Shown: piece by piece, positions 12,101 to 63,100 of the stretch | How positions within the stretch are numbered: the stretch's first letter is position 1 | Layout: every line of letters starts with the position of its first letter | Source of the DNA: Schmidtea polychroa | Lineage: Eukaryota | Assembly (NCBI GenBank): GCA_044892525.1 | Contig: CM097885.1 | Coordinates: 247,256,001 to 247,319,852, forward strand | Length of the DNA stretch: 63,852 bases | Direction of reading: 5' to 3' | The notes under the pieces: generated by a model | What the model saw: only the letters and a program-made list of their open reading frames with translations | The model's database searches: none | What the model was told of the DNA's origin: nothing | Translations under genes and position numbers: made by a program

Positions 12101-15100
12101 TGTTGATGCTGGTCCCATAGTGTAAGTCGATATAGTGGATTCTGTCGAGGAAGTTGGTGTTGTTCCACTTGTGGCAGTTTCTAATGTTGATGATATTGGT
12201 GATACGATCGAAGTAGTTCCAGATATTAATGATGTTGTGCTTTCTGTTGAAGATGTCGTTGATGAGAGTGAACTAGATGTTGATGCTGGTCCCATAGTGT
12301 AAGTCGATATAGTGGATTCTGTCGAGGAAGTTGGTGTTGTTCCACTTGTGGCAGTTTCTAATGTTGATGATGTTGGTGAAATGGTCACTGGTGTGCTACT
12401 AGTTAAGGAGAATGGTGTCGATATTTTCGGTGTGAAACATCCAATTATTTCCAATGCGAAAGATATTGTTGGGGATGTTTGATCTCTGAATTTAAGAAAT
12501 GATTAAACGATTTCATTATTATTTTTTTTTTTTTAGTTCATATCTAATATTTGTCAAGATGCTTTTTCATAATTGTCATTAACATTTAAAAGTTGGCGAA
12601 TATTACTGTTAATACTTGACATTTCAATTTCTTTAAATTTTTATTTTTAAATTTTATTTAAAAAGTTTCTGAAAAATTAATTTCTTTTCATAAAACTTGA
12701 ATGTAGGCACGCTTGAAAAATGAAAAAGTAATTTTTTCTTTTATATCAATTCTAATGATTCTTTACAATAGAATGACCTGGTAGATTATATAGAAACGAT
12801 TGACCAAAGCGTACGTTTTACTTCGACACTTTCAAAATTGTGGTAGAAAATTTTGATATTAGAGGTTATTTCTTACTTTGGTTTATTGGGATTTTGAGAT
12901 ATATTAAATTCAATTATTTTCGTTGTGTCATTTTATAAATTAAATTTGATATGTTACAGAAGTATTAAAACTATATCTAATACCCTTAAAATATGATGAA
13001 TTGTAACTTACATATTTTGTATTGTGGTAATACGAAATTCTATGTTTTGGATTTCTGAACCTGGATTTACTATTGGAGAAGACAATTTGTCCAAAAGTGT
13101 ATTAGTAGAAACTAAGTCTCTTCCTGTCATGGTTACGGAAGATTGGACACCATCTCGTAAGATGACAATAAATTGGAAAGTTTTGATTTTCTGAGGTTTA
13201 TCAGTAACGAAATTAATTTCATCGACTGCCGCTGATTGTGTTTCTAATAACAATTAATTGGAAAATGAATTTCTGCATTGACAGGGAAAAATAAATTTAC
13301 GTCTTTGAGTAGGATTAACATCGATTAAAATTTTTGAACCGGTTAGGGATACACCTGAGACAGTTCCGAGTTTTTGGGTAGAATCGGTTGGCAGTTGTTT
13401 GTAATCAACAATAACAGTAATGTCGGAAGGCGGTATAATCTATTTGTATAAATATTTACTAAAATATTACAATAATAATCTTATTACATTTATGTCAGAC
13501 ATTCCGTTTTTCTTATTGCACAATTGTGTACTAGTGACCAGTGGTGTAGATATTGTTCCAGAGATTTGGGAGGTTGTTGATGTTAATGATTTGGTTGATG
13601 AAATAGTACCAGATGTTGAACCTGTGGTTAATACAGTAGTAATAGTGGATGGAGTAGTCGATATAGTGGATTCTGTCGAGGAAGTTGGGGTTGTTGCACT
13701 TGTGGCAGTTTCTAATGTTGATGATGTTGGTGATACAATGGAAGTAGTTCCTGATATTAATGACGTTGTGCTTTCTGTTGAAGATGTCGTTGATGAGAGT
13801 GAACTAGATGTTGATGCTGGTCCCATAGTGTAAGTCGATATAGTGGATTCTGTCGAGGAAGTTGGTGTTGTTCCACTTGTGGCAGTTTCTAATGTTGATG
13901 ATGTTGGTGATACGATCGAAGTAGTTCCTGATATTAATGATGTTGTTCTTTCTGTGGAAGATTTCGTTGATGAGAGTGAACTAGATGTTGATGCTGGTCC
14001 CATAGTGTAAGTCGATATAGTGGATTCTGTCGAGGAAGTTGGTGTTGTTCCACTTGTGGCAGTTTCTAATGTTGATGATATTGGTGATACGATCGAAGTA
14101 GTTCCTGATATTAATGATGTTGTGCTTTCTGTTGAAGATGTTGTTGATGAGAACGAACTAGATGTTGATGCTGGTCCCATAGTGTAAGTCGATATAGTGG
14201 ATTCTGTCGAGGAAGTTGGGGTTGTTCCACTTGTGGCAGTTTCTAATGTTGATGATATTGGTGATACGATCGAAGTAGTTCCAGATATTAATGATGTTGT
14301 GCTTTCTGTTGAAGATGTCGTTGATGAGAGTGAACTAGATGTTGATGCTGGTCCCATAGTGTAAGTCGATATAGTGGATTCTGTCGAGGAAGTTGGTGTT
14401 GTTCCACTTGTGGCAGTTTCTAATGTTGATGATATTGGTGATACGATCGAAAAAGTTCCAGATATTAATGATGTTGTTCTTTCTGTTGAAGATGTCGTTG
14501 ATGAGAGTGAACTAGATGTTGATGCTGGTCCCATAGTGTAAGTCGATATAGTGGATTCTGTCGAGGAAGTTGGGGTTGTTCCACTTGTGGCAGTTTCTAA
14601 TGTTGATGATGTTGGTGATACGATCGAAGTAGTTCCTGATATTAATGATGTTGTTCTTTCTGTGGAAGATGTCGTTGATGAGAGTGAACTAGATGTTGAT
14701 GCTGGTCCCATAGTGTAAGTCGATATAGTGGATTCTGTCGAGGAAGTTGGTGTTGTTCCACTTGTGGCAGTTTCTAATGTTGATGATGTTGGTGATACGA
14801 TGGAAGTAGTTCCAGATATTAATGATGTTGTTCTTTCTGTGGAAGATGTCGTTGATGAGAGTGAACTAGGTGTTGATGCTGGTCCCATAGTGTAAGTCGA
14901 TATAGTGGATTCTGTCGAGGAAGTTGGTGTTGTTCCACTTGTGGCAGTTTCTAATGTTGATGATATTGGTGATACGATCGAAGTAGTTCCAGATATTAAT
15001 GATGTTGTGCTTTTTGTTGAAGATGACGTTGATGAGAGTGAACTAGATGTTGATGCTGGTCCCATAGTGTAAGTCGATATAGTGGATTCTGTCGAGGAAG

Positions 15101-18100
15101 TTGGTGTTGTTCCACTTGTGGCAGTTTCTAATGTTGATGATATTGGTGATACGATCGAAGTAGTTCCAGATATTAATGATGTTGTGCTTTCTGTTGAAGA
15201 TGTCGTTGATGAGAGTGAACTAGATGTTGATGCTGGTCCCATAGTGTAAGTCGATATAGTGGATTCTGTCGAGGAAGTTGGGGTTGTTCCACTTGTGGCA
15301 GTTTCTAATGTTGATGATGTTGGTGATACGATCGAAGTAGTTCCAGATATTAATGATGTTGTTCTTTCTGTGGAAGATGTCGTTGATGAGAGTGAACTAG
15401 ATGTTGATGCTGGTCCCATAGTGTAAGTCGATATAGTGGATTCTGTCGAGGAAGTTGGTGTTGTTCCACTTGTGGCAGTTTCTAATGTTGATGATGTTGG
15501 TGATACGATCGAAGTAGTTCCTGATATTAATGATGTTGTTCTTTCTGTGGAAGATGTCGTTGATGAGAGTGAACTAGATGTTGATGCTGGTCCCATAGTG
15601 TAAGTCGATATAGTGGATTCTGTCGAGGAAGTTGGTGTTGTTCCACTTGTGGCAGTTTCTAATGTTGATGATGTTGGTGATACGATGGAAGTAGTTCCTG
15701 ATATTAATGATGTTGTGCTTTCTGTTGAAGATGTCGTTGATGAGAGTGAACTAGGTGTTGATGCTGGTCCCATAGTGAAAGTCGATATAGTGGATTCTGT
15801 CGAGGAAGTTGGTATTGTTCCACTTGTGGCAGTTTCTAATGTTGATGATATTGGTGATACGATCGAAGTAGTTCCTGATATTAAAGATGTTGTGCTTTCT
15901 GTTGAAGATGTCGTTGATGAGAGTGAACTAGATGTTGATGCTGGTCCCATAGTGTAAGTCGATATAGTGGATTCTGTCGAGGAAGTTGGTGTTGTTCCAC
16001 TTGTGGCAGTTTCTAATGTTGATGATATTGGTGGTACAATGGAAGTAGTTCCTGATATTAATGATGTTGTTCTTTCTGTGGAAGATGTCGTTGATGATAG
16101 TGAACTAGATGTTGATGCTGGTCCCATAGTGTAAGTCGATATAGTGGATTCTGTCGAGGAAGTTGGTGTTGTTCCACTTGTGGCAGTTTCTAATGTTGAT
16201 GATGTTGGTGATACGATGGAAGTAGTTCCAGATATTAATGATGTTGTTCTTTCTGTGGAAGATGTCGTTGATGAGAGTGAACTAGGTGTTGATGCTGGTC
16301 CCATAGTGTAAGTCGATATAGTGGATTCTGTCGAGGAAGTTGGTGTTGTTCCACTTGTGGCAGTTTCTAATGTTGATGATATTGGTGATACGATCGAAGT
16401 AGTTCCTGATATTAATGATGTTGTTCTTTCTGTGGAAGATGTCGTTGATGAGAGTGAACTAGATGTTGATGCTGGTCCCATAGTGTAAGTCGATATAGTG
16501 GATTCTGTCGAGGAAGTTGGTGTTGTTCCACTTGTGGCAGTTTCTAATGTTGATGATGTTGGTGATACGATGGAAGTAGTTCCTGATATTAATGATGTTG
16601 TGCTTTCTGTTGAAGATGTCGTTGATGAGAGTGAACTAGATGTTGATGCTGGTCCCATAGTGAAAGTCGATATAGTGGATTCTGTCGAGGAAGTTGGTAT
16701 TGTTCCACTTGTGGCAGTTTCTAATGTTGATGATATTGGTGATACGATCGAAGTAGTTCCTGATATTAAAGATGTTGTGCTTTCTGTTGAAGATGTCGTT
16801 GATGAGAGTGAACTAGATGTTGATGCTGGTCCCATAGTGTAAGTCGATATAGTGGATTCTGTCGAGGAAGTTGGTGTTGTTCCACTTGTGGCAGTTTCTA
16901 ATGTTGATGATATTGGTGGTACAATGGAAGTAGTTCCTGATATTAATGATGTTGTTCTTTCTGTGGAAGATGTCGTTGATGATAGTGAACTAGATGTTGA
17001 TGCTGGTCCCATAGTGTAAGTCGATATAGTGGATTCTGTCGAGGAAGTTGGTGTTGTTCCACTTGTGGCAGTTTCTAATGTTGATGATATTGGTGATACG
17101 ATGGAAGTAGTTCCTGATATTAATGATGTTGTTCTTTCTGTGGAAGATGTCGTTGATGAGAGTGAACTAGATGTTGATGCTGGTCCCATAGTGTAAGTCG
17201 ATATAGTGGATTCTGTCGAGGAAATTGGTGTTGTTCCACTTGTGGCAGTTTCTAATGTTGATGATATTGGTGATACAATGGAAGTAGTTCCTGATAGTAA
17301 TGATGTTGTTCTTTCTGTGGAAGATGTCGTTGATGAGAGTGAACTAGGTGATGATGCTGGAACCATAGTGTAAGTCGATATAGTGGATTCTGTCGAGGAA
17401 GTTGGTGTTGTTCCACTTGTGGCAGTTTCTAATGTTGATGATATTGGTGATACAATGGAAGTAGTTCCTGATAGTAATGATGTTGTTCTTTTTGTGGAAG
17501 ATGTCGTTGATGAGAGTGAACTAGGTGATGATGCTGGAACCATAGTGTAAGTCGATATAGTGGATTCTGTCGAGGAAGTTGGTGTTGTTCCACTTGTGGC
17601 AGTTTCTAATGTTGATGATATTGGTGGTACAATGGAAGTAGTTCCTGATATTAATGATGTTGTTCTTTCTGTGGAAGATGTCGTTGATGATAGTGAACTA
17701 GATGTTGATGCTGGTCCCATAGTGTAAGTCGATATAGTGGATTCTGTCGAGGAAGTTGGTGTTGTTCCACTTGTGGCAGTTTCTAATGTTGATGATGTTG
17801 GTGATACGATGGAAGTAGTTCCAGATATTAATGATGTTGTTCTTTCTGTGGAAGATGTCGTTGATGAGAGTGAACTAGGTGTTGATGCTGGTCCCATAGT
17901 GTAAGTCGATATAGTGGATTCTGTCGAGGAAGTTGGTGTTGTTCCACTTGTGGCAGTTTCTAATGTTGATGATATTGGTGATACGATCGAAGTAGTTCCA
18001 GATATTAATGATTTTGTGCTTTTTGTTGAAGATGACGTTGATGAGAGTGAACTAGATGTTGATGCTGGTCCCATAGTGAAAGTCGATATAGTGGATTCTG

Positions 18101-21100
18101 TCGAGGAAGTTGGTGTTGTTCCACTTGTGGCAGTTTCTAATGTTGATGATGTTGGTGATACGATGGAAGTAGTTCCTGATATTAATGATGTTGTGCTTTC
18201 TGTTGAAGATGTCGTTGATGAGAGTGAACTAGATGTTGATGCTGGTCCCATAGTGAAAGTCGATATAGTGGATTCTGTCGAGGAAGTTAGTATTGTTCCA
18301 CTTGTGGCAGTTTCTAATGTTGATGATATTGGTGATACGATCGAAGTAGTTCCCGATATTAAAGATGTTGTGCTTTCTGTTGAAGATGTCGTTGATGAGA
18401 GTGAACTAGATGTTGATGCTGGTCCCATAGTGTAAGTCGATATAGTGGATTCTGTCGAGGAAGTTGGTGTTGTTCCACTTGTGGCAGTTTCTAATGTTGA
18501 TGATATTGGTGGTACAATGGAAGTAGTTCCTGATATTAATGATGTTGTTCTTTCTGTGGAAGATGTCGTTGATGATAGTGAACTAGATGTTGATGCTGGT
18601 CCCATAGTGTAAGTCGATATAGTGGATTCTTTCGAGGAAGTTGGTGTTGTTCCACTTGTGGCAGTTTCTAATGTTGATGATATTGGTGATACGATGGAAG
18701 TAGTTCCTGATATTAATGATGTTGTTCTTTCTGTGGAAGATGTCGTTGATGAGAGTGAACTAGATGTTGATGCTGGTCCCATAGTGTAAGTCGATATAGT
18801 GGATTCTGTCGAGGAAATTGGTGTTGTTCCACTTGTGGCAGTTTCTAATTTTGATGATATTGGTGATACAATGGAAGTAGTTCCTGATAGTAATGATGTT
18901 GTTCTTTCTGTGGAAGATGTCGTTGATGAGAGTGAACTTGGTGATGATGCTGGAACCATAGTGTAAGTCGATATAGTGGATTCTGTCGAGGAAGTTGGTG
19001 TTGTTCCACTTGTGGCAGTTTCTAATGTTGATGATATTGGTGATACGATCGAAGTAGTTCCAGATATTAATGATGTTGGGCTTTCTGTTGAAGATGTCGT
19101 TGATGAGAGTGAACTAGATGTTGATGCTGGTCCCATAGTGTAAGTCGATATAGTGGATTCTGTCGAGGAAGTTGGGGTTGTTCCACTTGTGGCAGTTTCT
19201 AATGTTGATGATATTGGTGATACGATCGAAGTAGTTCCAGATATTAATGATGTTGTGCTTTCTTTTGAAGATGTCGTTGATGAGAGTGAACTAGATGTTG
19301 ATGCTGGTCCCATAGTGTAAGTCGATATAGTGGATTCTGTCGAGGAAGTTGGTGTTGTTCCACTTGTGGCAGTTTCTAATGTTGATGATATTGGTGATAC
19401 GATCGAAGTAGTTCCTGATATTAATGATGTTGTGCTTTCTGTTGAAGATGTTGATGAGAGTGAACTAGGTGTTGATGCTGGTCCCATAGTGTATGTCGAT
19501 ATAGTGGATTCTGTCGAGGAAGTTGGTGTTGTTCTACTTGTGGCAGTTTCTAATGTTGATGATATTGGTGATACAATGGAAGTAGTTCCTGATATTAATG
19601 ATGTTGTTCTTTCTGTGGAAGATGTTGTTGATGACAGTGAACTTGATGTTGATGCTGGTCCCATAGTGTAAGTCGATATAGTGGATTCTGTCGAGGAAGT
19701 TGGTGTTGTTCCACTTGTGGCAGTTTCTAATGTTGATGATGTTGGTGATACGATGGAAGTAGTTCCTGATATTAATGATGTTGTGCTTTCTGTTGAAGAT
19801 GTTGTTGATGAGATTGAACTCGATGTTGATGCTGGTCCCATAGAGTAAGTCGATATAGTGGATTCTGTCGAGGAAGTTGGTGTTGTTCCACTTGTGGCAG
19901 TTTCTAATGTTGATGATATTGGTGATACAATGGAAGTAGTTCCTGATATTAATGATGTTGTGCTTTCTGTTGAAGATGTTGATGAGAGTGAACTAGATGT
20001 TGATGCTGGTCCCATAGTGTAAGTCGATATAGTGGATTCTGTCGAGGAAGTTGGTGTTGTTCCACTTGTGGCAGTTTCTAATGTTGATGATATTGGTGAT
20101 ACGATGGAAGTAGTTCCTGATATTAATGATTTTGTGCTTTCTGTTGAAGATGTTGATGAGAGTGAACTTGATGTTGATGCTGGTCCCATAGTGTATGTCG
20201 ATATAGTGGATTCTGTCGAGGAAGTTGGTGTTGTTCCACTTGTGGCAGTTTCTAATGTTGATGATATTGGTGGTACAATGGAAGTAGTTCCTGATATTAA
20301 TGATGTTGTTCTTTCTGTGGAAGATGTCGTTGATGAGAGTGAACTCGATGTTGATGCTGGTCCCATAGTGTAAGTCGATATAGTGGATTCTGTCGAGGAA
20401 GTTGGTGTTGTTCCACTTGTGGCAGTTTCTAATGTTGATGATATTGGTGATACAAGGGAAGTAGTTCCTGATATTAATGATGTTGTTTTTTCTGTGGAAG
20501 ATGTCGTTGATGAGAGTGAAGTCGATGTTGATGCTGGTCCCATAGTGTAAGTCGATATAGTGGATTCTGTCGAGGAAGTTGGTGTTGTTCCACTTGTGGC
20601 AGTTTCTAATGTTGATGATATTGGTGATACGATCGAAGTAGTTCCTGATATTAATGATGTTGTACTTTTTGTCGAAGATGTTGTTGATGAATGTGAACTA
20701 GATGTTGATGCTGGTCCCATAGTGTAAGTCGATATAGTGGATTCTGTCGAGGAAGTTGGTGTTGTTCCACTTGTGGCAGTTTCTATTGTTGATGATATTG
20801 GTGATACGATCGAAGTAGTTCCTGATATTAATGATGTTGTGCTTTCTGTTGAAGATGTTGTTGATGAGAATGAACTAGATGTTGATGCTGGTCCCATAGT
20901 GTAAGTCGATATAGTGGATTCTGTCGAGGAAGCTGATGTTCCACTTGTGGCAGTTTCTAATGTTGATGTTGTTGGTGATACGACAGAAGTAATTGAAGAT
21001 AATGAAGTTGTAACTTTTTTCGGAGTAAAGCAACCAATGACCTCTAAACGGACTGCTACTGTTGGATTGGTTCCATCTCTAATTAAGACAAGAGTTATAT

Positions 21101-24100
21101 ATTTGTTTATGAAATTGAATTTTAATTAATGATTTTTTGAAATAATAGATAAATATTATAATTTCATCACTTTAGAAAATATTTAGATAACTGAAACTTA
21201 CTCGTTTTCAAGAATTGTAATAGTGATTTCTAAATTGGTGATTTGAGAACCTGGATTTACTTTTGGCGAATTCAAGTAATCCAATAACTTTGCAGAGTCT
21301 GCTAGATCTGTGCCTAATATTACTACATTCGATGTATCGCCATTGTCGAATGTGACTGTGAATTCTGTAGTTAGAACCTTTGTAGTATTGTCTATTCCAA
21401 TATTGACCTCATTGATTGGTGGTGTCTGTGTTGCTGAAGATGAATTTTATTGAATTATTTGGTATTTTCAAGATAAGAAATAAATTTACCTTGTTTATTC
21501 AGATCTACTTGAATTTGAATTATTTGACCAGTAGTTGTTAAACCTTGGGCCGTTCCAAGTTTTTCATTTGATTCTATAGGTAACTGTTTATTATCGACAA
21601 TAACTGTGATGTCAGATGGTTGAATAATCTATTGAAAATGAGTAAAGTTAAATTTTGCATAAGATATTTTAATGTAAGTTACATTTTTGTCTTTCATTCC
21701 GTCTTGATTAAAACATTGTATAGGGACTGTTGTGGTCAGTGTTGTTGTTTCATTTAATGGTCGTGGTGTAGAAGGCCTTGTTGGTATCTTTTTTGTTGTT
21801 GTTGTTTCTGATGTCAAAATAATTTCAGTTACTTCTGTTATCATAGGTGTTTTTTCCTGTGTTGAAGTTCCTAGACAATTTAGAAATTTTGTTTGGTCCT
21901 TTAAAACTATATACTTTTACAACTTATTGGTTCGTCAAGGTTTGGATTTTTACAGTCCGCAATATTATCACAGTTTTTGGCACAGATCATATTTCCTGTA
22001 ATATCTTCACAAAATGTTTCTTCATTATTGCAAAATTGTGTTGTCAATAGGGTTTTTTCTATTGTTGTTGTCAATAATTCTGTATTCATGGTTGTAGCCG
22101 ATATTTTAGTTGCAAATGTCGTAGTTGTTGATAGTGAAGTTGTTACTTCTTTCGGAGTAAAGCAACCAATGACCTCTAAGCGAACAACTATTGTTGGATT
22201 GGAGTCATCGCTAAATGAGACAAGAGTTATAAATTTGTTTAGGAAATCAAATAATTTGATTGAAATTTTGAAACATTATATAAATTTTGAAAACTGTTAT
22301 TTAACTCAAACTTACGGGTTTCGAGTAGTTGTAATAGTAATTTCTATACTGTCGATTTTAGATCCTGGATTTACTTTTGGAGAATTCAAGTAATCCAATA
22401 ATTTTGGAGAGTCTTGTAGATCTTTGCCAGATTTTAATACTTTCGATATATCGCCATTTTCCAATTTGACTTTCAATTCTGCAACTAGAACCTTTGTAGC
22501 ATTGTCTACGAAAATATTGACCTCATTGATTGCTGCTGTCTGTGTTTCTAAAAATGAATTTTATTGAATAATTTAATATTTTCAAAATGAGATTTGAATT
22601 TACCATTTTTAGTCGGATTTACTTCAAAAACAACTACTGAACCAGTAATGGTTAAACCTTTGGTCGTTCCAAGTTGTTCATTTGACTCTGTAGGTAGTGG
22701 TTTATTATCGACAGTAATTGTGATGTCAGATGGTTGAATAGTCTAATATAAGTACGAGAAGTTAAAATCCACATGGAATATTAGAATTTAAGTTACATTT
22801 TTCTCTGTCATTCCGTCTTTAATTAAACATGGTATTGGAGTTGTTGTTGTTTGTGTTGGTGTTGTTGTAGCTGATGTTGTGGTTGCAGATGTCGTAGTTG
22901 TTGATAGTGAAGTTGTTACTTCTTTCGGAGTAAAGCAACCAATGACCTCTAAGCGAACAACTATTGTTGGATTGGAGTCATCGCTAAATGAGACAAGAGT
23001 TATAAATTTGTTTAGGAAATCAAATAATTTGATTGAAATTTTGAAACATTATATAAATTTTGAAAACTGTTATTTAACTCAAACTTACGGGTTTCGAGTA
23101 GTTGTAATAGTAATTTCTATACTGTCGATTTTAGATCCTGGATTTACTTTTGGAGAATTCAAGTAATCCAATAATTTTGGAGAGTCTTGTAGATCTTTGC
23201 CAGATTTTAATACTTTCGATATATCGCCATTTTCCAATTTGACTTTCAATTCTGCAACTAGAACCTTTGTAGCATTGTCTACGAAAATATTGACCTCATT
23301 GATTGCTGCTGTCTGTGTTTCTAAAAATGAATTTTATTGAATAATTTAATATTTTCAAAATGAGATTTGAATTTACCATTTTTAGTCGGATTTACTTCAA
23401 AAACAACTACTGAACCAGTAATGGTTAAACCTTTGGTCGTTCCAAGTTGTTCATTTGACTCTGTAGGTAGTGGTTTATTATCGACAGTAATTGTGATGTC
23501 AGATGGTTGAATAGTCTAATATAAGTACGAGAAGTTAAAATCCACATGGAATATTAGAATTTAAGTTACATTTTTCTCTGTCATTCCGTCTTTAATTAAA
23601 CATGGTATTGGAGTTGTTGTTGTTTGTGTTGGTGTTGTTGTAGCTGATGTTGTGGTTGCAGATGTCGTAGTTGTTGATAGTGAAGTTGTTACTTCTTTCG
23701 GAGTAAAGCAACCAATGACCTCTAAGCGAACAACTATTGTTGGATTGGAGTCATCGCTAAATGAGACAAGAGTTATAAATTTGTTTAGGAAATCAAATAA
23801 TTTGATTGAAATTTTGAAACATTATATAAATTTTGAAAACTGTTATTTAACTCAAACTTACGGGTTTCGAGTAGTTGTAATAGTAATTTCTATACTGTCG
23901 ATTTTAGATCCTGGATTTACTTTTGGAGAATTCAAGTAATCCAATAATTTTGGAGAGTCTTGTAGATCTTTGCCAGATTTTAATACTTTCGATATATCGC
24001 CATTTTCCAATTTGACTTTCAATTCTGCAACTAGAACCTTTGTAGCATTGTCTACGAAAATATTGACCTCATTGATTGCTGCTGTCTGTGTTTCTAAAAA

Positions 24101-48100: not shown

Positions 48101-51100
48101 GAAATTTTGAAACATTATATAAATTCTGAAAACTGTTATTTAACTCAAACTTACGGGTTTCGAGTAGTTGTAATAGTAATTTCTATACTGTCGATTTTAG
48201 ATCCTGGATTTACTTTTGGAGAATTCAAGTAATCCAATAATTTTGGAGAGTCTTGTAGATCTTTGCCAGATTTTAATACTTTCGATATATCGCCATTTTC
48301 CAATTTGACTTTCAATTCTGCAACTAGAACCTTTGTAGCATTGTCTACGAAAATATTGACCTCATTGATTGCTGCTGTCTGTGTTTCTAAAAATGAATTT
48401 TATTGAATAATTTAATATTTTCAAAATGAGATTTGAATTTACCATTTTTAGTCGGATTTACTTCAAAAACAACTACTGAACCAGTAATGGTTAAACCTTT
48501 GGTCGTTCCAAGTTGTTCATTTGACTCTGTAGGTAGTGGTTTATTATCGACAGTAATTGTGATGTCAGATGGTTGAATAGTCTAATATAAGTACGAGAAG
48601 TTAAAATCCACATGGAATATTAGAATTTAAGTTACATTTTTCTCTGTCATTCCGTCTTTAATTAAACATGGTATTGGAGTTGTTGTTGTTTGTGTTGGTG
48701 TTGTTGTAGCTGATGTTGTGGTTGCAGATGTCGTAGTTGTTGATAGTGAAGTTGTTACTTCTTTCGGAGTAAAGCAACCAATGACCTCTAAGCGAACAAC
48801 TATTGTTGGATTGGAGTCATCGCTAAATGAGACAAGAGTTATAAATTTGTTTAGGAAATCAAATAATTTGATTGAAATTTTGAAACATTATATAAATTTT
48901 GAAAACTGTTATTTAACTCAAACTTACGGGTTTCGAGTAGTTGTAATAGTAATTTCTATACTGTCGATTTTAGATCCTGGATTTACTTTTGGAGAATTCA
49001 AGTAATCCAATAATTTTGGAGAGTCTTGTAGATCTTTGCCAGATTTTAATACTTTCGATATATCGCCATTTTCCAATTTGACTTTCAATTCTGCAACTAG
49101 AACCTTTGTAGCATTGTCTACGAAAATATTGACCTCATTGATTGCTGCTGTCTGTGTTTCTAAAAATGAATTTTATTGAATAATTTAATATTTTCAAAAT
49201 GAGATTTGAATTTACCATTTTTAGTCGGATTTACTTCAAAAACAACTACTGAACCAGTAATGGTTAAACCTTTGGTCGTTCCAAGTTGTTCATTTGACTC
49301 TGTAGGTAGTGGTTTATTATCGACAGTAATTGTGATGTCAGATGGTTGAATAGTCTAATATAAGTACGAGAAGTTAAAATCCACATGGAATATTAGAATT
49401 TAAGTTACATTTTTCTCTGTCATTCCGTCTTTAATTAAACATGGTATTGGAGTTGTTGTTGTTGTTGTCGGTGTTATCGTTGTTATTGTTTGTGTTGGTG
49501 TTGTTGCTTCTGATGTTGTGGAAGCAGCTGTTGTTATAGTTGTTGATCGCGAAATTGTAAATTGACTCGTTTCTATTGTTTTTATTGGTGTAGTGGTTTC
49601 ATTAGTTGTTATTGATATTGTACTTGTAAATATTTCGCAATTCTTTTCATCAAAGGCGTTCACACAGTCGTTTACTCCGTTACATTGTTTTGTTCCGGTA
49701 ATGCATTGGCAGATTCTTTCAGTCGTCGTCGTTTTGTCATTTTCACATAATATCATCTCAGGTTCTTTGCATAAACATTCTATATTTTCCATTTATATAT
49801 TTTTTAACAATAATAACAAAATTTACCGCATCCGTGTTCGTCACTTCCGTCTCCGCAATCATCTTGTCCGTCACATTTGTTTGTTAATGTTATACAATTT
49901 TGGCTATTATTACATTTGAATTCTGTTATCTCGCATTCTGAATTTTCTATTATTTATTTTTTTAATATTAGCTATTTACTTTTGCAGTTTTCCTCGTCTG
50001 ATTTGTCGTTTACCCCGCAGTCATATATTCCATTGCATTTTTTGTTTTCTTCTATACAAATATTTGAATCTTTACACATACTTTGGTGTGGTAAGCATCC
50101 TAAATGTATAAATTTCTGTAAATTTTAATTTTCTATATTTTTTTCCATATTTATATAAAGTTTTTGAATTGTGTTATGTAGAAAAAGTCTTCTCTTTTTT
50201 TTGGTAAAAATTGAATTGTTATTAAAAGTCGCTCTTAAAAATCAGGGTTTTTTGATTTGATGAATCTTTTTATTCCGGTGAAATTCAGTTCTGATTTCGT
50301 AAATTAAGATATTGTTGCAATAATCAGGATAATTCAGTGTAGTGCCCCTGTCTAGCACTTTTATTAATTTAATCATTGAACTAAAAATATATTGGATTAA
50401 TTAAATTAAAATTAAAAACAATTGTTTAAATAATCTTTTAATTTCACTTTTTACATAAATCATTATAAAATTCAATTAAAAAAAATCATCAAATTCAAAC
50501 ATGTCTAACAAAGTAACTGAAGTTGTCACTGAAGTCAAACAAGTTGAAGAAGTTGATCATCAAATCGATTCAAAATCAATGGATCAAATATGGCAGAAAT
50601 ACAGAAAACAGAAACCTTCATCGTATTCACAATGATATCTCTAGTGATATTCAAGTTCTTCGACAATGTTAATAACAATAAATTATTTGTTCAAGTTAAT
50701 TGTATGTCTCTACATTCAGGATATTCCATTGCTCATAAATCATTGGACTGTTTAAATTTCAAGTTATTATTTTTACCTAAAAACCAACTTCACATATTCA
50801 ACTTTATGATATGGGCATATTAAAAACTTTCAAAACTTATTATGTAAATGCACTCATAAATTATTTTCTTAATGATTGTGAATCATCGAATTTTCTTGAA
50901 AAATTTAATATACGCCAAGCTATTGTTATAATTTCAGAACTTAGGAAATGTTAAGGGTTGAAACTATCAGAATTAATGAATATTGTAAATCATACCTTGC
51001 TGACATTAGAAAGGATAAAGTTGAAGAAAATATCAATGAAGTAATAGAAGAAACACTTGAAAATCTTGATGGGATTTAAAACATTCAATTTTACAATGAT

Positions 51101-54100
51101 GAAGATATTATAAATGATGTTGAAACTTCAGATGTTTTAAAATAATTTGAAAAATTAGAGTAAAATGTTAGAATATTTAGTTCAGTTTCTTTGAAAGAAT
51201 TTTATGCATTCAGAAAAAAACTTTTGAATGATTTTAGAATAGCTCGTGAAATCAAAATTATCGATTTTTTGATTAAAAAAAAATCTTTTTATCATGAAAC
51301 TTATTTTACATCTAAAGTTCTTATTCAATGTTTCGTCAAAAATGATGTCCCAAACCGGTGTCCAAATGTATTACTATATTCAATTGTAGTTATTTTTTCA
51401 GTTAGCAGACTTTGCCTTTTTAACATTCTTTAATTTAATCCATATTTATAAATTTTTATGTTCATTGTTAATGATAATTTAATAATTATTTTTTTCGCGT
51501 TATTGTTTATTGTAAAAATATATTTCTAATTTGTTATCTTTGCTTTCTTTGATGGGTAACGGTACCATTCAACTTTTAAAGATTTTACTAATTTTTTATG
51601 AATGCTTTCGTTTTCTTAAAATTTATAAAAACTTACCACAATCTTTTTCGTCGGAATTATCTTCGCAGTTCTGAGTTCTATCGCACTTTTTTGTCATTGG
51701 TATGCAAACTCCATTGGAAATGCATTGAAATTGTTGAAGATCACACTCATCTTAATTATATTTATTTTTAATAATTAAATGATTTTTAAACTTTATTTTA
51801 AAATTTTTTTATAATTTTGATAATACCAGTAGAACATGTGAGAAAATCTGATCTGTATAATAGTTATTGTTCCTTCAGAAAGTTTTTTGAAAAGACTTTA
51901 TTTATGAATTGCAGTAATAACATGATAAATTAATAATAGTAGAAATCGAGATTATTTTTACAAATGGAATGCAGTTGTTGACGCCGTTAGAAAGGGAATG
52001 GAAGTAACTATAGTATACGGATGCAAAAAATAATGCCTCTACATGTTCATCTGAATAGTTCACTCTCTAGGATTACTGTTTCCAAGGGTAATTTTGAAAT
52101 TAATTTTTGAGTCCCTTAAACTATAGCTCAACCAGAGAATGTTTAAGATTGGTTCTGATGGTGCTCGAAAATTATACTAATTCAAAGTATTCACTCGAAT
52201 GATTGAAATACATGCGTTGTAACTGTCAATGAAATAGATTATGGTTAATTCCCGTTAAACTGATGGCCTTTTTATATTTAAATTTTAGCTTTAGATAATT
52301 AGTTATTTTTAATTTTCAATCAACACCTGATTAATAAAATTATTTAAGGTGATTACTGTTGTAAGTAATATATTTTGATGTTTTGATTGAATTTTTAGCA
52401 ATTATTATATCTGTCAGTCGGTTATTTATTTATATGTAAATAATAATAAGTTATTTATCTAATAATAATAAATTATAAAACTTCATCAAATATTGGTATT
52501 ATATCTATTGATTAAATCGTTAATAAACCATGCAAAATCTATATTTATAATTTTATGAGTCATATGACAGACATCGATTCGCTTATCTTTCACTTGTGGA
52601 CAGGCCCGGTTTTAGGCATAGGCGACGTCGGCAGCAGCCTAGGGCGCCGATTTACAAGCGGGCGCCAAATAGTTCTGCTTTTTTTATCAAGTAAATTAAA
52701 TATTTTATAAACTTTCTATCTTTATATTGATATATACATATGTATGAATTTGTATATATATATATATATATATTATATCTACAATGTCACAAGAACGGCT
52801 TGTGGGATTAGCAATATTGTCGATTGAACACGAAATGGCGCGTGATATAGATACGAAGTTGCTGCTTGAAGATTTCGCTAAACTAAAAGCACGAAAAATT
52901 AAATTTTAAATGGTTTTTGTTTTTATATATATTTTTGTGTAATAAATAAATGAAGTATAGTTATTTTATTTTCATTTACTTCTTTAATTATTGGGTTTGT
53001 TTCTAGACTAGAGGCGCCATTTTTTTAGTTTGCCTAGGGCGCCAAATACTCTAGCGTCGGGCCTGCTTGTGGAGATGTTATTATTTCTGATCAACTTTAT
53101 ACTTTTTATTGATTGAAATATTAACTATGTGTGATAAATGATTTCCAGTATTAGGCGTAATTTTTATTACTAAAAAGTTAATAATCTTACTAATACCTGT
53201 GATTGTCTAACAATTTGGATAGCAAATATTACTTTTTTTGGATTTTTTTCTAATACAAATTATTTAGTCTTACTAATATTTTGATGTTATTTCCATTTAT
53301 ATTTCTATCTTGATTTATGAAAGTATTATGTGATTCGTAGTTTTCAATATATAGTTTTCCACTAAATAAATTTTAAATAAAAATTTCTCAGTAAAACTGA
53401 TTAATTATTAGCCATTATTTACCAAAGAATAATTTAGTTTTATCAAAAGAGCATGGTCAGTCACAAATGATTTAGAACCACTGATTTAAGATTGCATTAC
53501 CTAACCAATTAATGATAATAGATAACCAATAATCCTTTCAACTCTTGAATTTATTTTGCATGACATACCTGTAACTCCAGCATACTTATTACAATTTCAA
53601 TTAAAAATGGTAGATTTAAGACAAGATAAATAAAAACGAAACAGGTGTCATGCAAATGTGCATTCAAAACACTATATATATATATTTAATTTAAGTAATT
53701 TATTTAAACAAAAATAACAACAGTCGATGACTATTCATAAGTTTTATAGCTTATAAATAGCGCCGACATAGTCACCAACGGAGTGCAAAAGGTTAATTAT
53801 ATCTTGAATAACAAATGCAACCTTTAGATTCATGATGTTTTTTAACATAATGAATCAAAGATACTTCTGTTATTTTGTCTGTCCACATATTATCATTATA
53901 TAAAAACAAAATTTACTGCAGTTTTTCTCATCTTCTGAATTTGAACAATCAGTAATTTTATCGCATATCTTGCTAGATTCAATGCATTTTCCATCGTCAC
54001 AACGAAATTGACTTGGTGTACATGTTGTTATGCATTCACTGTCATCTTCAGTGCAATTGAATTGAGCTTGTACACATTGACTGTAAATTTTATTCAGTTG

Positions 54101-57100
54101 AAATATTTGAATTTTATTGAAATGATAAAAATATACCATTTTTTACAATTTTCCATTTTAATAATAGCTCCATTCACATAACTTTGACCGTTATAGTAAC
54201 AGGGACAGGTAGTTGGTGGAATACATTCGCCGTTAAGATCTATCATCCCATTGGGACATGTACAACCTTCAACACAATGGCTTGTACTACAGTGTGAAGG
54301 TGCATTAGAACCAATCGTATCACACGTTTGCGGGCACGGAGATGCGCAAGCATTGTAATGCTTTCCACCTTCGCACATTATAGCTGATTTAGAAATAAGT
54401 ATCACATATTAGCCTACATAATATAAAATATATTTACGGCACAAGTTTTGAGTTCTCCATTTAACAGGAATTCCGAGAAACGCACATTGGGTTGCAAATG
54501 TTGCTAGAGAGGTGCAAAGACATTCGCAATCACCTCCACGATTGCATCCGCATGCATCATACAAACAATTACTGTAGTACCTGTTAACGTCTTGATGCAT
54601 TGCCTCAATGCAGGAACTAAAAACACCGTTTGTATCTTTCATTATACCACACATTTGTTCCGCCCAGCTTTTTCTATCAGGATTCTATTAAAAAATATAA
54701 TTGTGTAATTGATTTAAGAGTAAATTAAAAATAATTACGGCATTGCACATATCTTGCTCTTTTGATGAAGCTACGTTGTTTTCAGGAGAAATTTCATAAG
54801 GACAAATATCTGCATTGGCGATAAAAGATTCTGCGAATTGTATTGCATCTTCATATTTCATTGTTCCATGCATATATTCATTTTGAGAATCTCCGTCATA
54901 ATTTCCACAAAGACCTTGTACATTACCTTGAAATGAAGGTTTCAAAAACAGATAAACTCGCGTGCCTTAAATGAAGATAAAATAATCTAATTGACTGACA
55001 ATTATTACTTCTGTCCCATAGTACTCGTAAACCGATCGTATCACTAACAAGTTGGGTGAAGAATGTTAGTTGTTCTATAACTACGTCGTATTTTGGGAAC
55101 AACGGAAGGGTATCATTATTTCCTCTTGATAATAGATAGGTTTGACCTCCAATTACGATTTGTACAAATTTAGCACATGTTGCCTGATAAAAATATATAT
55201 TACAATCAAAATCAAGTTATTCAAATCAAATAATAATACAATTCATGCGTTTTCAGAACGAAATCTGAATAATAAAATGTACGTGGTATTTGTAATGACA
55301 TAAAAAGTTATAATAACACGGAATATATTAACGACTTTACCAGTGACAAATTAGTCATTTGAAGCCCTGGCAGTTTTCATGCGCCCCTGATGACTGAGGA
55401 TAATTTTTAATATAATGAATTTGAAATTAAATTCCCCCAACCCATTAGTGTGTTATTAAGTACGCTTATTTATTAAATATTTTCAATTTTTTGGCGATAA
55501 TGGGCGGTATTTCATTTATTTTCATTTTGACACAGGATCAAAAATGTGTGTTGAATAGGATTAAGTCTTTGTTCTTTTGTCAAAATAAATATAATGAAAT
55601 ATCAAAAAGAAAACAAATCAAAGGTGACAAAGATATGAAAAAAATTACTGATAATATAGTCAGTTATGTCAAAATTTATGTCAAAATATATATATTGGTA
55701 TTCAGAAATATAAAGAAAAAGATAAAATTGAAATGGAATAATTTTGGAAAAGACAAAGGATTCTGCTGAGAATGATTAATATTTGAATGATTGAAAATGG
55801 TAAAATTGGGAATTTAATTTAATTCAGCATTGTCAAAAAATTACTTTCAAAATCAAGTAATTTGATTTAACCCCTTTTAGAACAAAGGCTGAAATTGGTT
55901 AATATATTAACCAGTTGCTTTAAGGTCTATATTTCTAATACCGCCCATATAAACATCAACTTTAATACATCAATACTTTGTCGACAACTCTCTTTGATTA
56001 ATTTATTGTTCTAACTACTTGAAGTTTGCGTTACAATGAAGAAGTCCAGCCATGTGAAAGATCTAAAAAGAACTGTATATGTATGTAAACAGAAACCATG
56101 TCATCTGCGCGGACGTCAATTGCGCGGGTCCAACTGCGCGGATGTCAATTGCGCGGGTCNNNNNNNNNNNNNNNNNNNNNNNNNNNNNNNNNNNNNNNNN
56201 NNNNNNNNNNNNNNNNNNNNNNNNNNNNNNNNNNNNNNNNNNNNNNNNNNNNNNNNNNNNNNNNNNNNNNNNNNNNNNNNNNNNNNNNNNNNNNNNNNNN
56301 NNNNNNNNNNNNNNNNNNNNNNNNNNNNNNNNNNNNNNNNNNNNNNNNNNNNNNNNACTCCGAGTCTATCCGACAAAATATTTTGTCCCCCTATGGGTAA
56401 TGCTCACAAGGGTACTGCTCACGCTCAACAACTCACAAGGGTATTATTAAACAATTGACTACCCGCGCAATTGGCGTCCGCGCAATTGGCGTCCGCGCAA
56501 TTGACGTGCTACGATGTAAACAGTGTAATTTGCCGTTGTGCACTTTATGTTTTGAACTTTTTCACAAGAATGGTTGTAAAAAAATATAATCAATACTTGT
56601 TTGAAATGTTTATATTTTTTGTAATAAAATTTTGTACAAAATCTCTTTTTTATTACATAAATTTATTTTCTAACATGGTGCTAAACAATCTTTGGTCAAT
56701 ATATTAACCGATGAAATCTTTGATTTTTCTGATGGACTATGAAATATTTTTATTTTTATTTTTCAAATTTATTTTATCTGGATAATGAATATTTTAAAAT
56801 ATATAAGTTAAAATTCAAATTCCAAAATAATTAATTTGTCCTACAAAGAGTTAACATTTATAATACGATAATTAAACAATTGTTATCCATTTTATAATGA
56901 ATTCAATGACATTGGTTGAAAATTGCTTAAAATTCCGTTTTTCAACCTTTTCCGATTGGTCGAACGGGATTCTTAATTTATCACCGCGCATTATCTGTTT
57001 TAGATTTTTATTTTTACTGATATTGACACTTGTAAATTGGTTTCATGGGAAAAATTAAACTACCGAAATATTTTTCTAATAAATTATTGCAGAAAATTAT

Positions 57101-60100
57101 TTATAATTTTTATTTTGTTTATCCAATTAAACTTTCCGTATGTCAGTTGAAAAAAACTGATTTAATCGGTCAAAGAAAATTAATTAAAGAACATTTACAA
57201 AATTTATTACATTTAACCCTGTAATAACATCCTCAAAATTCAGTCTGAAACTCAATTATAACTTTTGTGTGAAGTGCCTCATGATACTGTTTCTCTTAAT
57301 GGGTAAAGGTTTCTCGCGGGATTTCATTTAACACCCTATGACATTGGTTATTGTGTTATATTACAAATTTAAGAAAAATGGATTTGTGATTTTTACTCGT
57401 GAAGCATTTTACAGATTGAAATTGATAGTAACGCGCATTAAAACAATAAAAATGTACAAATATTTCATTCAAAAATATCCTCACACTTCGGAACCCTATG
57501 CGTAACATTAGGGGTTGACATGCAACGCGCGTAAAAAATTATTGCGCTTTAGTTTTAAAAATCTCAAATCTCCAATTTAGTTAGAAATGTAAATATTTAA
57601 TACCTGACTAAATCCACAAGCGATATTGGCAACCGAGATTGTAATTGATGGAATATTGTTTGATAAATCCCCGGGACTATCTATCAATGTGTACATGCAA
57701 CTTCCTTGAAATGAAAACATTTGACCATCTAAAGTCTTGTAATGTGGATCACCATAAGCTATGCAAACAGCTGGAAGAAAATATTAACCAAACATTGAGC
57801 TGAAATTATCAATTTACCTTCGCAATTGGCTGTTTCCTTTGACAAAAGAGTCCACATTCTGTTTGAACAAATATATTTTGCACATTTAATAGTAATGACA
57901 TCATTCGGTGCATATTCTCGACTCATATAGATGCATGGGCAGTCAGATGGTTGAACGCAAGTTCCCTTTTATAAATTTATAATATCATAACACTTAAATT
58001 CAATTCTAATACATCTTTTTTTGAAACGGTACCATTGGGACAGCCACATGAATTTGCGATTGAAGAAGTATCAGTGCATGTATCGTAATTGGTGCAACTA
58101 TTGCACTGATCTACAGAATCCATATAGACTTGATTTTTTGGGCAAACTGGATTAGTACAATTGTCCTTGGTTTTGCAATTCAATCGTCCATTAACACAAA
58201 CACTGAAATAATAATATTCTATTGGGTTTTCAAAAAATGTTTTATGTACCAAGTTTGACAGTTGATAGTGATATTCGTTCCTGCAGGGATTTCTGGATCT
58301 TTTGGCCTTGAAGGATTCCAACATGTACATTCAGACTCTGAAACACATTGCCCTGTTCCTGTTTTATAATAATTTGGAGCGCATTCACATCCAGGAAAAC
58401 AATCATCTTCGCATTTACTAGCAGTAGCTTCATTTAGTTCTCGACATGTACTTTTGCAAGTGCGAGAACATATCTGAAAAACTGTTCCTCCAGCTTCGCA
58501 CAGTGGAACTACAAATATATTTAAACCAAATTTTCTTAGTTTAATGACTTATTTACTGCATGATTTTAAATGATTCGATGTAAAGGGCACTTCATATTGG
58601 ATGCCAAATCGTCTACAGGCAATAGCTGCATTCAGAATCGCTGAACAGTATGAAAGGGGTTGGCCTTTATCGGATGTTTGTTCTCGGCGACAATAAGTTG
58701 AGTAAAATTCTTTGTCGACTTTACTGCTGTTCATGCAAGCACTGAATTCGGGACCATTTAAAATCGTCGAACAAATGTCATTCTAATATTATAAGATAAT
58801 TAAAGTGAACTATCACTCATCAATTACATCTCCCGAGGGTGGATCAACAATATTTTGAGGGGTATTTGCACAGCTGCCCGTCATATATGATTTTGCAATA
58901 TTGACAATTGACTCGCGGATCGAATTTTCTTTTTCCGTGAAATCATTTTCTGAGTTTCCATCAAACTTTCCACATAATCCGATTAACTAAATCATTTTAT
59001 TAACCATATTTTAATAAAGAAATATCAACATTATTTTTTAGGGTGTCGCTGGCTTTGATATAAATAGACTTGCTGCCATCGAAATATAATTTAAAATGGC
59101 TGCTGAGTTTAACTTCGATATAAATATTTGTCAACTTTCTTATGTGAATATTTTTATCTGGTATGGTAAATGGAAGCTTTGTGGTGAAATCCTCTCCGTC
59201 AATAAATACATTAGTCTGAGAATCCCCCAATTTCGGCGAGGTAGCTTTTAAAATAATTTCTGATCCATTCATTTTTACACTCACGATTTTTGGTTCATTT
59301 ATAAATGCTGAACTTCCTTCCGAACCATGCATATTTTCTGTATTGCTTTGGATGATAACAAACACATTAGCTCTATCATCGGTATTATTTGCAGAGGGCT
59401 CTACAGCGACATATTGACATCCTACATCATTGAAAGCAAATTTTGCTCCATCAAAAGTATCAAACTGGGTTCCCATTATGCCACAAGTTGATGGGCATAT
59501 TTTTTCAGTGCAGTGCCAAAGCGAAGAATTGCATGTACTTAAAATTAAATATCGTTAGAAGTAAATCAGTTTTAAACGATTACCATGTGTTACAGTCAAA
59601 TTGTCTGACAGTTCCTGGAGGATGTTCCTGGCCATCATAAAGACATGGACAGCTTTCTGGTTTAATACAAGTGTTTCCATATTCAACTTCTCCTGGACCA
59701 CATATACATCGTCCGACTTTCGAATTCTGGCAGTATACACTTGGGGATTGGAAAAGATTTCTACATGTGACTGGGCATTCTGAAGCACAGTCTGACCATA
59801 CTTTATTGCCAAGACATTGCGTTTCTAGAAATATTCAATTACAATGTGCATTGTATTTTTCTAATGAAAATATACCACAAAGGGTATCGCTTCTCCATTG
59901 GATACATGAGCCTTTTGCTGAGCAAGAATCTGAATATGCTGATAAATGAGTGCATAATATATCAGAAACATTCGGAATTTCTAGGGTGGTGTTTGAGTTC
60001 TGGGATTTTCTGCAGATGTTCTCGACACACATAGAAAAGTAGGTATCAGAATTAACCTAAACAATTAATTTATATCAATGTATTATATGAAAAGTAATTA

Positions 60101-63100
60101 CTAAATCTGCACATCCGGGAAATTTCAGTCTTATTTTGCTGCACTGTTGATTTGCTAATATTTGATCGTCAGACTTGCATGTTGAAATAGTGTTTGCAAT
60201 ATCGGGACACTAAATATATTATATTATTAATAAATTAAATAATTATTTTATGGACAGATTTACAAATTATTAATGTGATTTATCTCATATTAATTGGCTT
60301 GTAATATTTTTAAATTTAATATTTAAAAATAAATATGAATAATTTAAAATAAATGGTTGTGAAGAAATTAAAATAAAATATATTTAATTTTTTAAATGAT
60401 TAACAAATTTAACATTAATCTCTAAGAAAATTTATATTTTGGTATATTNNNNNNNNNNNNNNNNNNNNNNNNNNNNNNNNNNNNNNNNNNNNNNNNNNNN
60501 NNNNNNNNNNNNNNNNNNNNNNNNNNNNNNNNNNNNNNNNNNNNNNNNNNNNNNNNNNNNNNNNNNNNNNNNNNNNNNNAAATTTGCATTTAAAATTATT
60601 ATTTTTGCAAAAAGTTGCATTTATAATTTTACTAGAATAATTTTTTTATAAAAATTTTTAAATTAATTTTAATTATTTAAATATGATTATAAAAATAAAA
60701 AAAATATGTTTCATAATGTTTATTCACTTTCCGGTAACAATGTTCCAATTTTATCGCTTGAATTGTAATAGAATATAAAATATTTAAAAACGTTATCTTT
60801 AGCAAAGTTCCTATCATTGGCAAGTAATTTTTTTAACATAGAAAAACTCCTCTCTCCAGATATTGAAGTGGGCGGGCAATCAATTAAATCAATATACCTC
60901 GATTGCGAAATGTTTTTGTTTTTCGCTTCCATTAACTCACTCATTCCATTTTTATCTAGGTGTAAATTAATAAATTTTTTCAAATCTACGGGCTCATCTT
61001 TAAAATCAATATTTCTTAATGATTTATATCCAGTCTCAATTGTATGTATGTCCATTTCAAATTCATCCAAAACTTTTATTAGCTGGTTATAATTCTTTTT
61101 AATCTCAACTAACTCACTAAACAAACCATCTGATTGAACAGCAATTTTCGTATTTGTCACAACGACTAACTATTCAAACAAATGGAAGTGAATTTGCATT
61201 TATTCGCATTTATTTTTTAAAAATTTGCATTTATTGCGTTTATTTGCAATTATTTGCATTGGAGAGCCCTAATAAATGATATTATTATAAGAATTTTTTT
61301 TAATTTTCACATCTGATTTCTTTTCAATTGACATTTTGTTTATTAAAGAATTGATTATGGATCAGTAAAGATATCGATGTTTTTTTGACATTCACAAGTT
61401 TTCGGCGCATATATAAATCTGTATATGTATATTGGATCTGTTTGGATCAATATTTATTAGACACAATTTAATTATATTAATTGGTTATAAATTGTGATAT
61501 AAAATCTTTCCACAATAACGTTATCTTACTCCTGATCCTTTGAACGAATTACCAAATGAAGCTACATTGTCGAAGTTTTTGAAGTCATTACCGGGAACAT
61601 TGTCTGCATTACCACATAAGCCAGTTACGTCCCCACTGAATATTGAATTGTGTATTGAAACAAAAATATTGCTATGATTATCCCATTTTAATTTTATATT
61701 TCCTGCTTCTAACGATAGTAAAATGAAGTCATCCTGTCTTATTACATACAGAGGAGTTCCTTAATTTTTATGAAAGTCAATTAAAAATATTTCTTTTTGA
61801 AAAATAAAACCTGGTATAATTAAAGCACTGTCAGTGTTGGTGACGGATAAAGCTGTCAATGGATTATCTGAATCAGTCGTATAAAGAAGTCCATCATCGG
61901 TACTTTTAACAATAACTTCGCCGGCTTCAATAACAATTCTCTATATTATAAAATATTAAAAGAAAAAAAAAATCATTTTATTACTTTAACACAGCCTTTT
62001 GCAGAGTTACAGTTTTCATATGCAATATTAATTGACCAAGTTACAGCAGACGCATCGGATGGTGCTGTTAAAATGTAATTACATCTTCCTTCAAATGTGT
62101 ATAGTTGATTGTCGAATGTCCGGTAATAGTCCAATCCATAACTGTGACAAGTGGTAAAATTCTCGCTATTCATATCATTACCCCCTGAATAATAAATTTT
62201 CAATATCACTTGGTATGACACAATTTTCTTTTTACTTGCAAAGTTCGCATTACAGGATACACATGAGCCTGACTGACTACCCCATGATCCTGATTTGTCT
62301 GCACAGCACTCATCATATGAAACCGCTTTTCCTAGGAAGTCTGATTTTTTGGCTGAAAAACATTGATCACTTTGGTAACAATAGAGTTTTGAGGGATGTT
62401 GGTTTTGAATGACTGTGGAATTAGTACAATTATAATTTCTTTTAATAAAACTTATTTACTGGTGGGACTGTCTTCATCACATTGTGTACCAGCATATTTT
62501 TCTTGGCATTTGCATTGATTTGGTGACATACAGACCCCTCCGTTATAGCAACCTCCCTTATCAGCATAACAAACCGCTAATAAATTAATTTTATATTTTA
62601 ATGTTTTTTTTTCAAAATTTTATTTACATATATTGCAGTATGGGAAATTTTCATATCCAACGCAACAATGTTCTTCTGTGACGACTTTTTGTCTAAATAT
62701 AACAGTATCAATGATAAAACCTTTCCAAAACTCTTACAAAGTAAAATTGCATTTCGGTCCAGTTATACCGCTGCTAACGTATAACTGCATGGATAATGCT
62801 TGCTGCCTCGAAGCAGGAATTGAAGAATCGTTGTATTGCTGAGCAATTGGTACAGATTTTTCGTTCAAGTTGTAGTTTTCCATCATCAGGCCAATGTATT
62901 CGTTGCATGGCCTCGTGATGGTATCAATGTCCAGGTTATAATCAAATAGACAATTATTTGGAGAGGAAATTGATCTGTAAATTTATTCATTTTTTTAATG
63001 TCGGATCAAATAAATAATTCCTTACTTTGGTTTAACTCCAATTAAAGTTTTGCCCGATTCAACAGATTGAGTTGTAAGTAGAGCATAAAGCAATATTGAG

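Follow-up and report, generated by a model that had tools for sequence, protein, structure and literature searches.

In polymeric mucins, the sugar-coated stretches must be interrupted by folded nodes that are not glycosylated. These nodes are CysD domains in vertebrates, and F5/8 type C (F5/8C, discoidin) domains in many protostomes. The F5/8C domain is characteristic of lophotrochozoan mucin-like proteins, and protostome mucin-like proteins bear it at the position that is held by the repeated module described here (Lang 2016, PMC4948705). The CysD domain carries a WxxW motif (PMC4948705). Mlig-ap2 of the flatworm Macrostomum is a giant secreted O-glycosylated adhesion protein. Its N-terminal region is of TIL/vWD/C8/LDL type, and its core consists of two highly repetitive motifs (PMC8621496).

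The window analysed here is a stretch of 63,852 nucleotides from Schmidtea polychroa (assembly GCA_044892525.1, contig CM097885.1, positions 247,256,001 to 247,319,852 of the forward strand). It carries what its sequence identifies as a gel-forming-mucin-like gene, with a VWD/LDLa head followed by globular modules ("beads") and Ser/Thr blocks. All features given below are numbered from the first letter of the window and lie on its minus strand. The bead is a genuine, expressed domain of 151 residues, and it is recognised by no database. Its descent from an F5/8C domain is given about an even chance. With 40 beads, the gene represents an extreme version of the mucin design.

The 151-residue module and its copies

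The initial annotation, made on the region 48636-49442, described a repeated module of about 151 residues with Cys at both ends and no Trp, and took it for a highly divergent F5/8C domain. The coding strand of this region is the minus strand, and short introns break its reading frame. Local splicing of four exons yields 151 residues identical to the string in that annotation, with Cys at residues 1 and 151 only. The discrete module is therefore confirmed, and it has the same features in all three of the types found in the window (A, B and C). The first type A copy extends over 48774-49441, with exons at 49441-49409, 49354-49216, 49159-48928 and 48822-48774. Its introns are 54, 56 and 105 nt long, each with GT..AG borders, and their phases 0, 1 and 2 are common to the three module types.

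The region 48636-49442 does hold the module, but it also includes a Thr-rich linker of 35 residues and exon 1 of the following copy. The linker lies at 48669-48773, and its length is 34, 35 or 43 aa elsewhere in the array. The exon starting at 48822 encodes the last 16 residues of the module, then the linker, and then the first 11 residues of the next module. Exon borders are out of step with domain borders in 48636-48822 and its equivalents. The exon that leads into the first module (49409-49779) comprises an LDL-receptor class A (LDLa) module (Pfam PF00057, E 1.4e-4), a linker rich in Thr, and the initial 11 residues of the first module.

Contigs of RNA type carry joints exactly at 48822/48928, 49159/49216, and 49354/49409, which are the three introns of the first type A copy. 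These contigs come from four runs of four studies with three organism labels; their source type was guessed, and expression level and strand are not readable from them. As they carry its joints, the splice model is observed and not merely predicted. Some of the contigs are 612 nt long. A spliced unit has 582 nt (151 + 43 residues), and the excess is k-1, which is the signature of a tandemly repeated mRNA. The joints of two upstream introns of 47 nt (49779-49827) and 42 nt (49937-49980) are also present in RNA-type contigs, as is the spliced exon 2/3 joint of type B. The stretch 48775-50100 occurs almost unchanged in runs labelled as two other organisms, a metagenome, and a sediment metagenome; these could be relabelled strains, prey or contaminants. 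Among metagenome contigs, no match was found either to the exact exon 2/3 junction or to a degenerate pattern of the best-conserved block.

The window contains 40 modules, comprising 35 of type A, one of type B, and four of type C. This bears out the repetition described in the initial annotation, with 35 near-identical copies, one diverged copy, and four of a third type, far beyond chance. The type A array occupies 22162-49441 and consists of 35 units of module plus linker, with a period of 770, 773 or 797 nt and introns of 54, 56 and 105 nt throughout. The number of units is the one in the assembly and depends on it. As protein, 31 of the 35 type A modules are identical, and the period varies only through the linker length of 34, 35 or 43 residues. 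The units are 97-100% identical in DNA, introns included, and the three linker lengths are the main difference among them. This near-identity indicates very recent amplification or ongoing homogenisation.

The single type B module (21030-21715) is 62% identical to type A, and it has the same exon phases and introns of 54, 56 and 123 nt. A type C module lies at 12437-13520 and is 48% identical to both type A and type B. Three more, nearly identical type C copies are found at 7368-8452, 2299-3383, and 59-1143. Every type has 151 residues, three introns at the same positions and in the same phases, two Cys (1 and 151), and no Trp. In all, 60 of the 151 positions, including both Cys, are invariant among the three types, and the longest invariant block is LLDxLxSPxVNPGS.

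The ratio of nonsynonymous to synonymous substitution (dN/dS) is 0.31 between types A and C and 0.21 between types B and C. Because of these low ratios, the module is judged to have been under long-term constraint. Between types A and B the ratio is about 1.6 (pN 0.20, pS 0.13), an excess that is not significant on 151 codons. The introns are about 18% diverged, on a level with the nonsynonymous figure. The A-B changes are concentrated at residues 46-58, 79-99, and 121-138, and this divergence may reflect relaxed or diversifying selection. N-glycosylation had been proposed from NET and NAT sequons, and both are present in type A. The idea is weak, since N57 is confined to type A, N73 is shared by types A and B, and type C has no sequon at all. 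Conserved N-glycosylation is accordingly rejected.

Relation of the bead to F5/8C domains

The module may be a very diverged, Trp-less descendant of an F5/8C domain, which is the leading reading at about even odds. This origin is favoured because of the architecture of the gene, the size of the module, its terminal Cys pair, and its end motif. The beads occupy exactly the place of the F5/8C domains in protostome mucin-like proteins. The size and the terminal Cys are those of an F5/8C domain, with 151 aa and Cys at 1 and 151 in all three types; the disulfide itself is predicted.

The discoidin C-terminal signature is of the type [LM]-R-x-E-[LIV]-x-G-C (PROSITE FA58C_2), and the modules end in VRLEVIGC (types A and B) or FALEIIGC (type C). 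A 22-position profile of the C-terminus was compared with 177,635 distinct PDB sequences, and neuropilin-2 came out on top, with 4 of the 9 matches. The alignments cover the last ten residues of both of its discoidin domains, IALRLELFGC and IGMRLEVLGC, at E 0.8. The resemblance of the C-terminal motif to that of discoidin appears to be real, as the best match falls on the corresponding end of both discoidin domains. The start of the module, C-x4-GM-x5-I-x-PSDIT, may resemble the discoidin starts of factor VIII, DDR and neuropilin.

A number of results weigh against an F5/8C origin. The neuropilin-2 match, with its E of 0.8, is not significant alone and comprises ten residues only. In type C the Arg of the C-terminal motif is replaced by Ala. 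A 20-residue profile of the N-terminus found nothing in the PDB, although it is too short to test the motif. Trp and aromatic core motifs are conserved in discoidin (PROSITE FA58C_1 type), and this core is absent from the module, which has no Trp and only 3-6 aromatic residues (Phe/Tyr).

Database searches likewise speak against this origin. Pfam, PDB and fold searches were run exon by exon, and the joined module was used in local scripts only. PF00754 gave no match at E<=10 with exons 2, 3 and 4/1 of type A or with exons 2 and 3 of types B and C. For the same exons of all three types, no other Pfam family was found beyond chance at E<=10. This agrees with the suggestion in the initial annotation that the module could be an unannotated domain beneath Pfam thresholds. 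An exhaustive phmmer search of 1.84e9 representative proteins with exon 3 (76 residues) gave 0 matches at E<=0.001. PDB sequence searches with exons 2 and 3, both singly and as three-type profiles, gave only chance-level matches (N1L, the ubiquitin hairpin, and SAMP2) and no discoidin. In the PDB search, the GSVVV hairpin of type A resembles the first hairpin of ubiquitin (TLTGKTITLEVEPS).

A profile of the F5/8C family was also prepared from 40 domains, cut from bacterial loci that were fetched with the degenerate pattern AxDGNxxTxW. All 40 domains match PF00754, with a best E of 6e-30. In hhalign comparisons with these 40 domains, exon 3 reached a probability of 0.1% and exon 2 a probability of 0.5%, and a third comparison gave 0.2%. 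The joined profile of the three types scored 11.5 against F5/8C, where column shuffles had a mean of 10.7 (standard deviation 1.9) and 42 of 150 shuffles reached the real score. The same bacterial profile reaches neuropilin-1 at about 1e-16, a fish F-type lectin at 6e-21, and galactose oxidase at 1e-23. Since the profile reaches neuropilin-1 and the module scores like its shuffles, the module is no member of PF00754 by sequence. The profile search proposed in the initial annotation thus failed to support its reading, both exon by exon and with the joined module. If the module does descend from PF00754, its divergence would far exceed that between neuropilin and bacterial CBM32 domains.

The structure predictions point in the same direction. 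Exon 3 alone was modelled by AlphaFold as strand-strand-helix-strand, with a predicted local distance difference test (pLDDT) of 73. No discoidin or CBM32 structure was found for this model among the Foldseek/VIA top 50. Its weak matches are alpha/beta sandwiches, FN3 domains, and ferredoxin-like structures (polymerase little finger, acylphosphatase). The equivalent piece of a true F5/8C domain, modelled as a control from an equally shallow three-row alignment, has a pLDDT of 65, five strands, and no helix. The Foldseek matches of this control are mostly CBM32, factor VIII C2, neuropilin b1, and lactadherin. The model test proposed in the initial annotation gave no discoidin match for exon 3 alone and several for the control. 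This result counts moderately against a canonical discoidin core, and its weight is only moderate because the fragment lacks five of the eight strands.

The hydrophobic periodicity of the module, averaged over the three types, is of beta type at 46-54, 76-86, 120-132, and 140-149, and of alpha type at 104-114. Taken together, predicted strands and periodicity give eight candidate strands, which fit the order and spacing of beta1-beta8, and a single helix (~104-112) that would correspond to the beta6-beta7 connection. In the discoidin (DS) topology, the barrel has a flat bottom made of strand connections that include beta6-beta7, and at this end a strictly conserved disulfide links the two termini (PMC4332414). 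The DS-like domain of DDR1 retains the fold at 9% identity (PMC4332414).

The fold of the bead is most likely an eight-stranded beta-barrel, with its ends joined by a putative Cys1-Cys151 disulfide. Its most likely origin would be the F5/8C domain found at the same position in protostome hemolectin-type mucins. Divergence would have erased the Trp/aromatic core signature and left the terminal motifs alone. Of the discoidin reading in the initial annotation, the size and the Cys pair stand and the end motif appears to, whereas profile similarity and a fold match for exon 3 were not obtained.

Other readings of the module

A tentative alternative, less probable but serious, is a lineage-restricted domain whose fold is unrelated to discoidin. 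Having arisen or been recruited within the lineage of this animal, such a domain would combine many beta-strands with one or more amphipathic helices and a terminal disulfide, and its end motif, a beta-strand followed by Gly-Cys, would be convergent. The alpha-type periodicity at 104-114, which is present in all three types, and the strand-strand-helix-strand model of exon 3, with its weak alpha/beta sandwich and FN3 matches only, both agree with an unrelated fold. So do the lack of relatives of exon 3 in the large protein set, the absence of the pattern of the best-conserved block from metagenome contigs, and a similarity to the F5/8C profile that is not above shuffles. The model of exon 3 covers only about half of the domain, however, and an unrelated fold would make the size, the Cys pair, the C-terminal motif matching neuropilin, and the F5/8C-typical position all coincidence. 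Should this alternative hold, which is possible though doubtful, the bead would be a new lineage-restricted extracellular fold, disulfide-closed and beta-rich, with the conserved helix-loop LLDxLxSPxVNPGS as its functional surface, and a single mucin would hold 40 copies of it.

It is improbable that the module is SEA-like or of another ferredoxin-like alpha/beta kind, such as the 156-aa repeats of MUC16. At a predicted hairpin, type A reads TG-SVVV (49241-49255, minus strand; residues 45-49), which spells the SEA cleavage motif, and G-SVVV would then be a self-cleavage site. Ferredoxin-like structures (polymerase little finger, acylphosphatase) are also the best weak matches of the exon 3 model. 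The other types lack the motif, however: Ser46 is replaced by Gln in type B (GQIIQ), and type C has GSKIL. SEA domains have four strands and two long helices in ~120 aa, whereas the module has eight predicted strands in ~151 aa. The segment between strands 1 and 2 is too short and too Pro-rich for the first SEA helix, and no exon matches SEA (PF01390) in Pfam.

The initial annotation had named a confident match to another family, such as SEA or CysD, as an outcome that would speak against a discoidin, and no such match was found for the exons in Pfam. CysD (Mucin2_WxxW) was rejected, as the module has two Cys, no Trp, and no Pfam match.

An assembly artefact or decaying repeat with no functional domain is very improbable and essentially excluded. 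Repeat collapse or expansion in the assembly can yield 35 copies that are almost identical including introns, but RNA-type contigs from four runs contain the module in spliced form, and no unit interrupts the reading frame. Moreover, the three diverged types agree in length, in intron phases and at 60 invariant residues, and dN/dS to type C is 0.2-0.3.

Gene context and comparison with known systems

Upstream of the beads, Pfam identifies three VWD, three C8 (one of them weak), one TIL and two LDLa domains in total. The VWD domains lie at 61973-62221, 59000-59476, and 54688-54945, and the C8 domains at 59835-60032, 58549-58734 (the weak one), and 54409-54654. TIL is found at 54094-54405 and LDLa at 53870-54139. 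These 5' exons (53870-62221) are consistent with the same gene and with three D assemblies. Part of the second or third assembly is unreadable, due to runs of N at 56160-56356 (197 bases) and 60449-60579 (131 bases). One AT-rich intron of the gene contains an open reading frame of 146 aa (60720-61160, minus strand). This frame has no Pfam match at E<=0.01, and by eye it resembles the C-terminal dimerisation part of an hAT-type transposase.

Downstream of the type A array, a six-Cys, LDLa-like stretch without a Pfam match (21916-22040) separates the last type A module from the type B module. It is followed, beyond type B, by a mucin block of the Pro/Thr/Ser (PTS) kind at 13521-21029. This block comprises 2503 aa of 59-aa (177-nt) repeats, with 30% Thr, 33% Ser, no Cys, and no stop. 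Further PTS blocks are found at 8453-12436, 3384-7367, and 1144-2298. The four open Ser/Thr blocks are 385-2503 aa long, contain ~63% Ser+Thr, and lack Cys. The type C modules sit between the long 177-nt repeat arrays (starts 13520, 8452, 3383, 1143). The composition is ~31% G+C. More than 14,000 residues of the gene are encoded inside the window, and its 3' end lies outside, including any further VWD units or cystine knot.

Repeated VWD-C8-TIL units and long Ser/Thr domains, the features of gel-forming-mucin-like VWD proteins, are both present. The bead would be a compact, non-glycosylated globular module in a giant secreted protein of this kind. From N- to C-terminus, the protein would consist of three VWD-C8-TIL assemblies, LDLa modules, and 40 beads, in which the assemblies would serve disulfide-linked polymerisation. 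The spacers would be short Thr-rich linkers for the 35 type A copies and long Ser/Thr mucin blocks for types B and C. By analogy with CysD or F5/8C beads, the beads may be protease-resistant folded nodes between O-glycosylated stretches, at which a polymeric mucus or adhesive protein would be cross-linked non-covalently or would bind ligands.

If the bead is a true Trp-less discoidin, the known sequence range of this fold is widened, and a changed or lost ligand site is suggested. If it is not a discoidin, it represents a new extracellular domain family. Either way, the bead may help to determine how the mucus or adhesive secretion of the animal behaves as a material. It is also useful as a marker in the annotation of similar genes, which would be left as "low complexity" by current pipelines.

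Sea urchin nectin reportedly has six tandem discoidin domains and is an adhesive secretion. It resembles the present gene in its tandem discoidin-type domains within a secreted adhesive glycoprotein of an aquatic invertebrate. In contrast, the domains of nectin are canonical FA58C recognised by databases, and the protein has neither a VWD head nor PTS blocks.

The SEA repeats of MUC16 are also dozens of folded, multi-exon units of ~150 aa that alternate with Ser/Thr-rich linkers. The type A module shares the letters GSVVV with them, but it has no SEA profile match, and the motif is not conserved among the types. Unlike the present gene, MUC16 is a membrane mucin and has no VWD assemblies.

The CysD domains of MUC2, MUC5AC and MUC5B have ~110 aa and ten Cys. 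Like the bead, they are small, non-glycosylated globular domains that interrupt the PTS stretches of a VWD-type polymeric mucin. The analogy is likely functional, as cross-linking nodes, and nothing suggests a relation.

Compared by description, Mlig-ap2 of Macrostomum has a head and a repetitive core like those of the present gene. According to that description, the repeat motifs of Mlig-ap2 are different, and its TSP-1/TIL part at the C-terminus has no counterpart to compare, as the 3' end of the present gene is outside the window.

The F5/8C domains (PF00754) of hemolectin/hemocytin-type and lophotrochozoan mucin-like proteins share the most with the bead. Both have ~150 aa with a Cys at each end, an apparently similar end motif of the h-R-x-E-h-x-G-C type, and a place after three VWD-C8-TIL units beside PTS stretches. 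The bead differs in having no match to the family profile and no Trp/aromatic core, and in the predicted helix at the beta6-beta7 connection of a fold that is itself only predicted. While those mucin-like proteins have one to a few copies of the domain, the present gene has 40.

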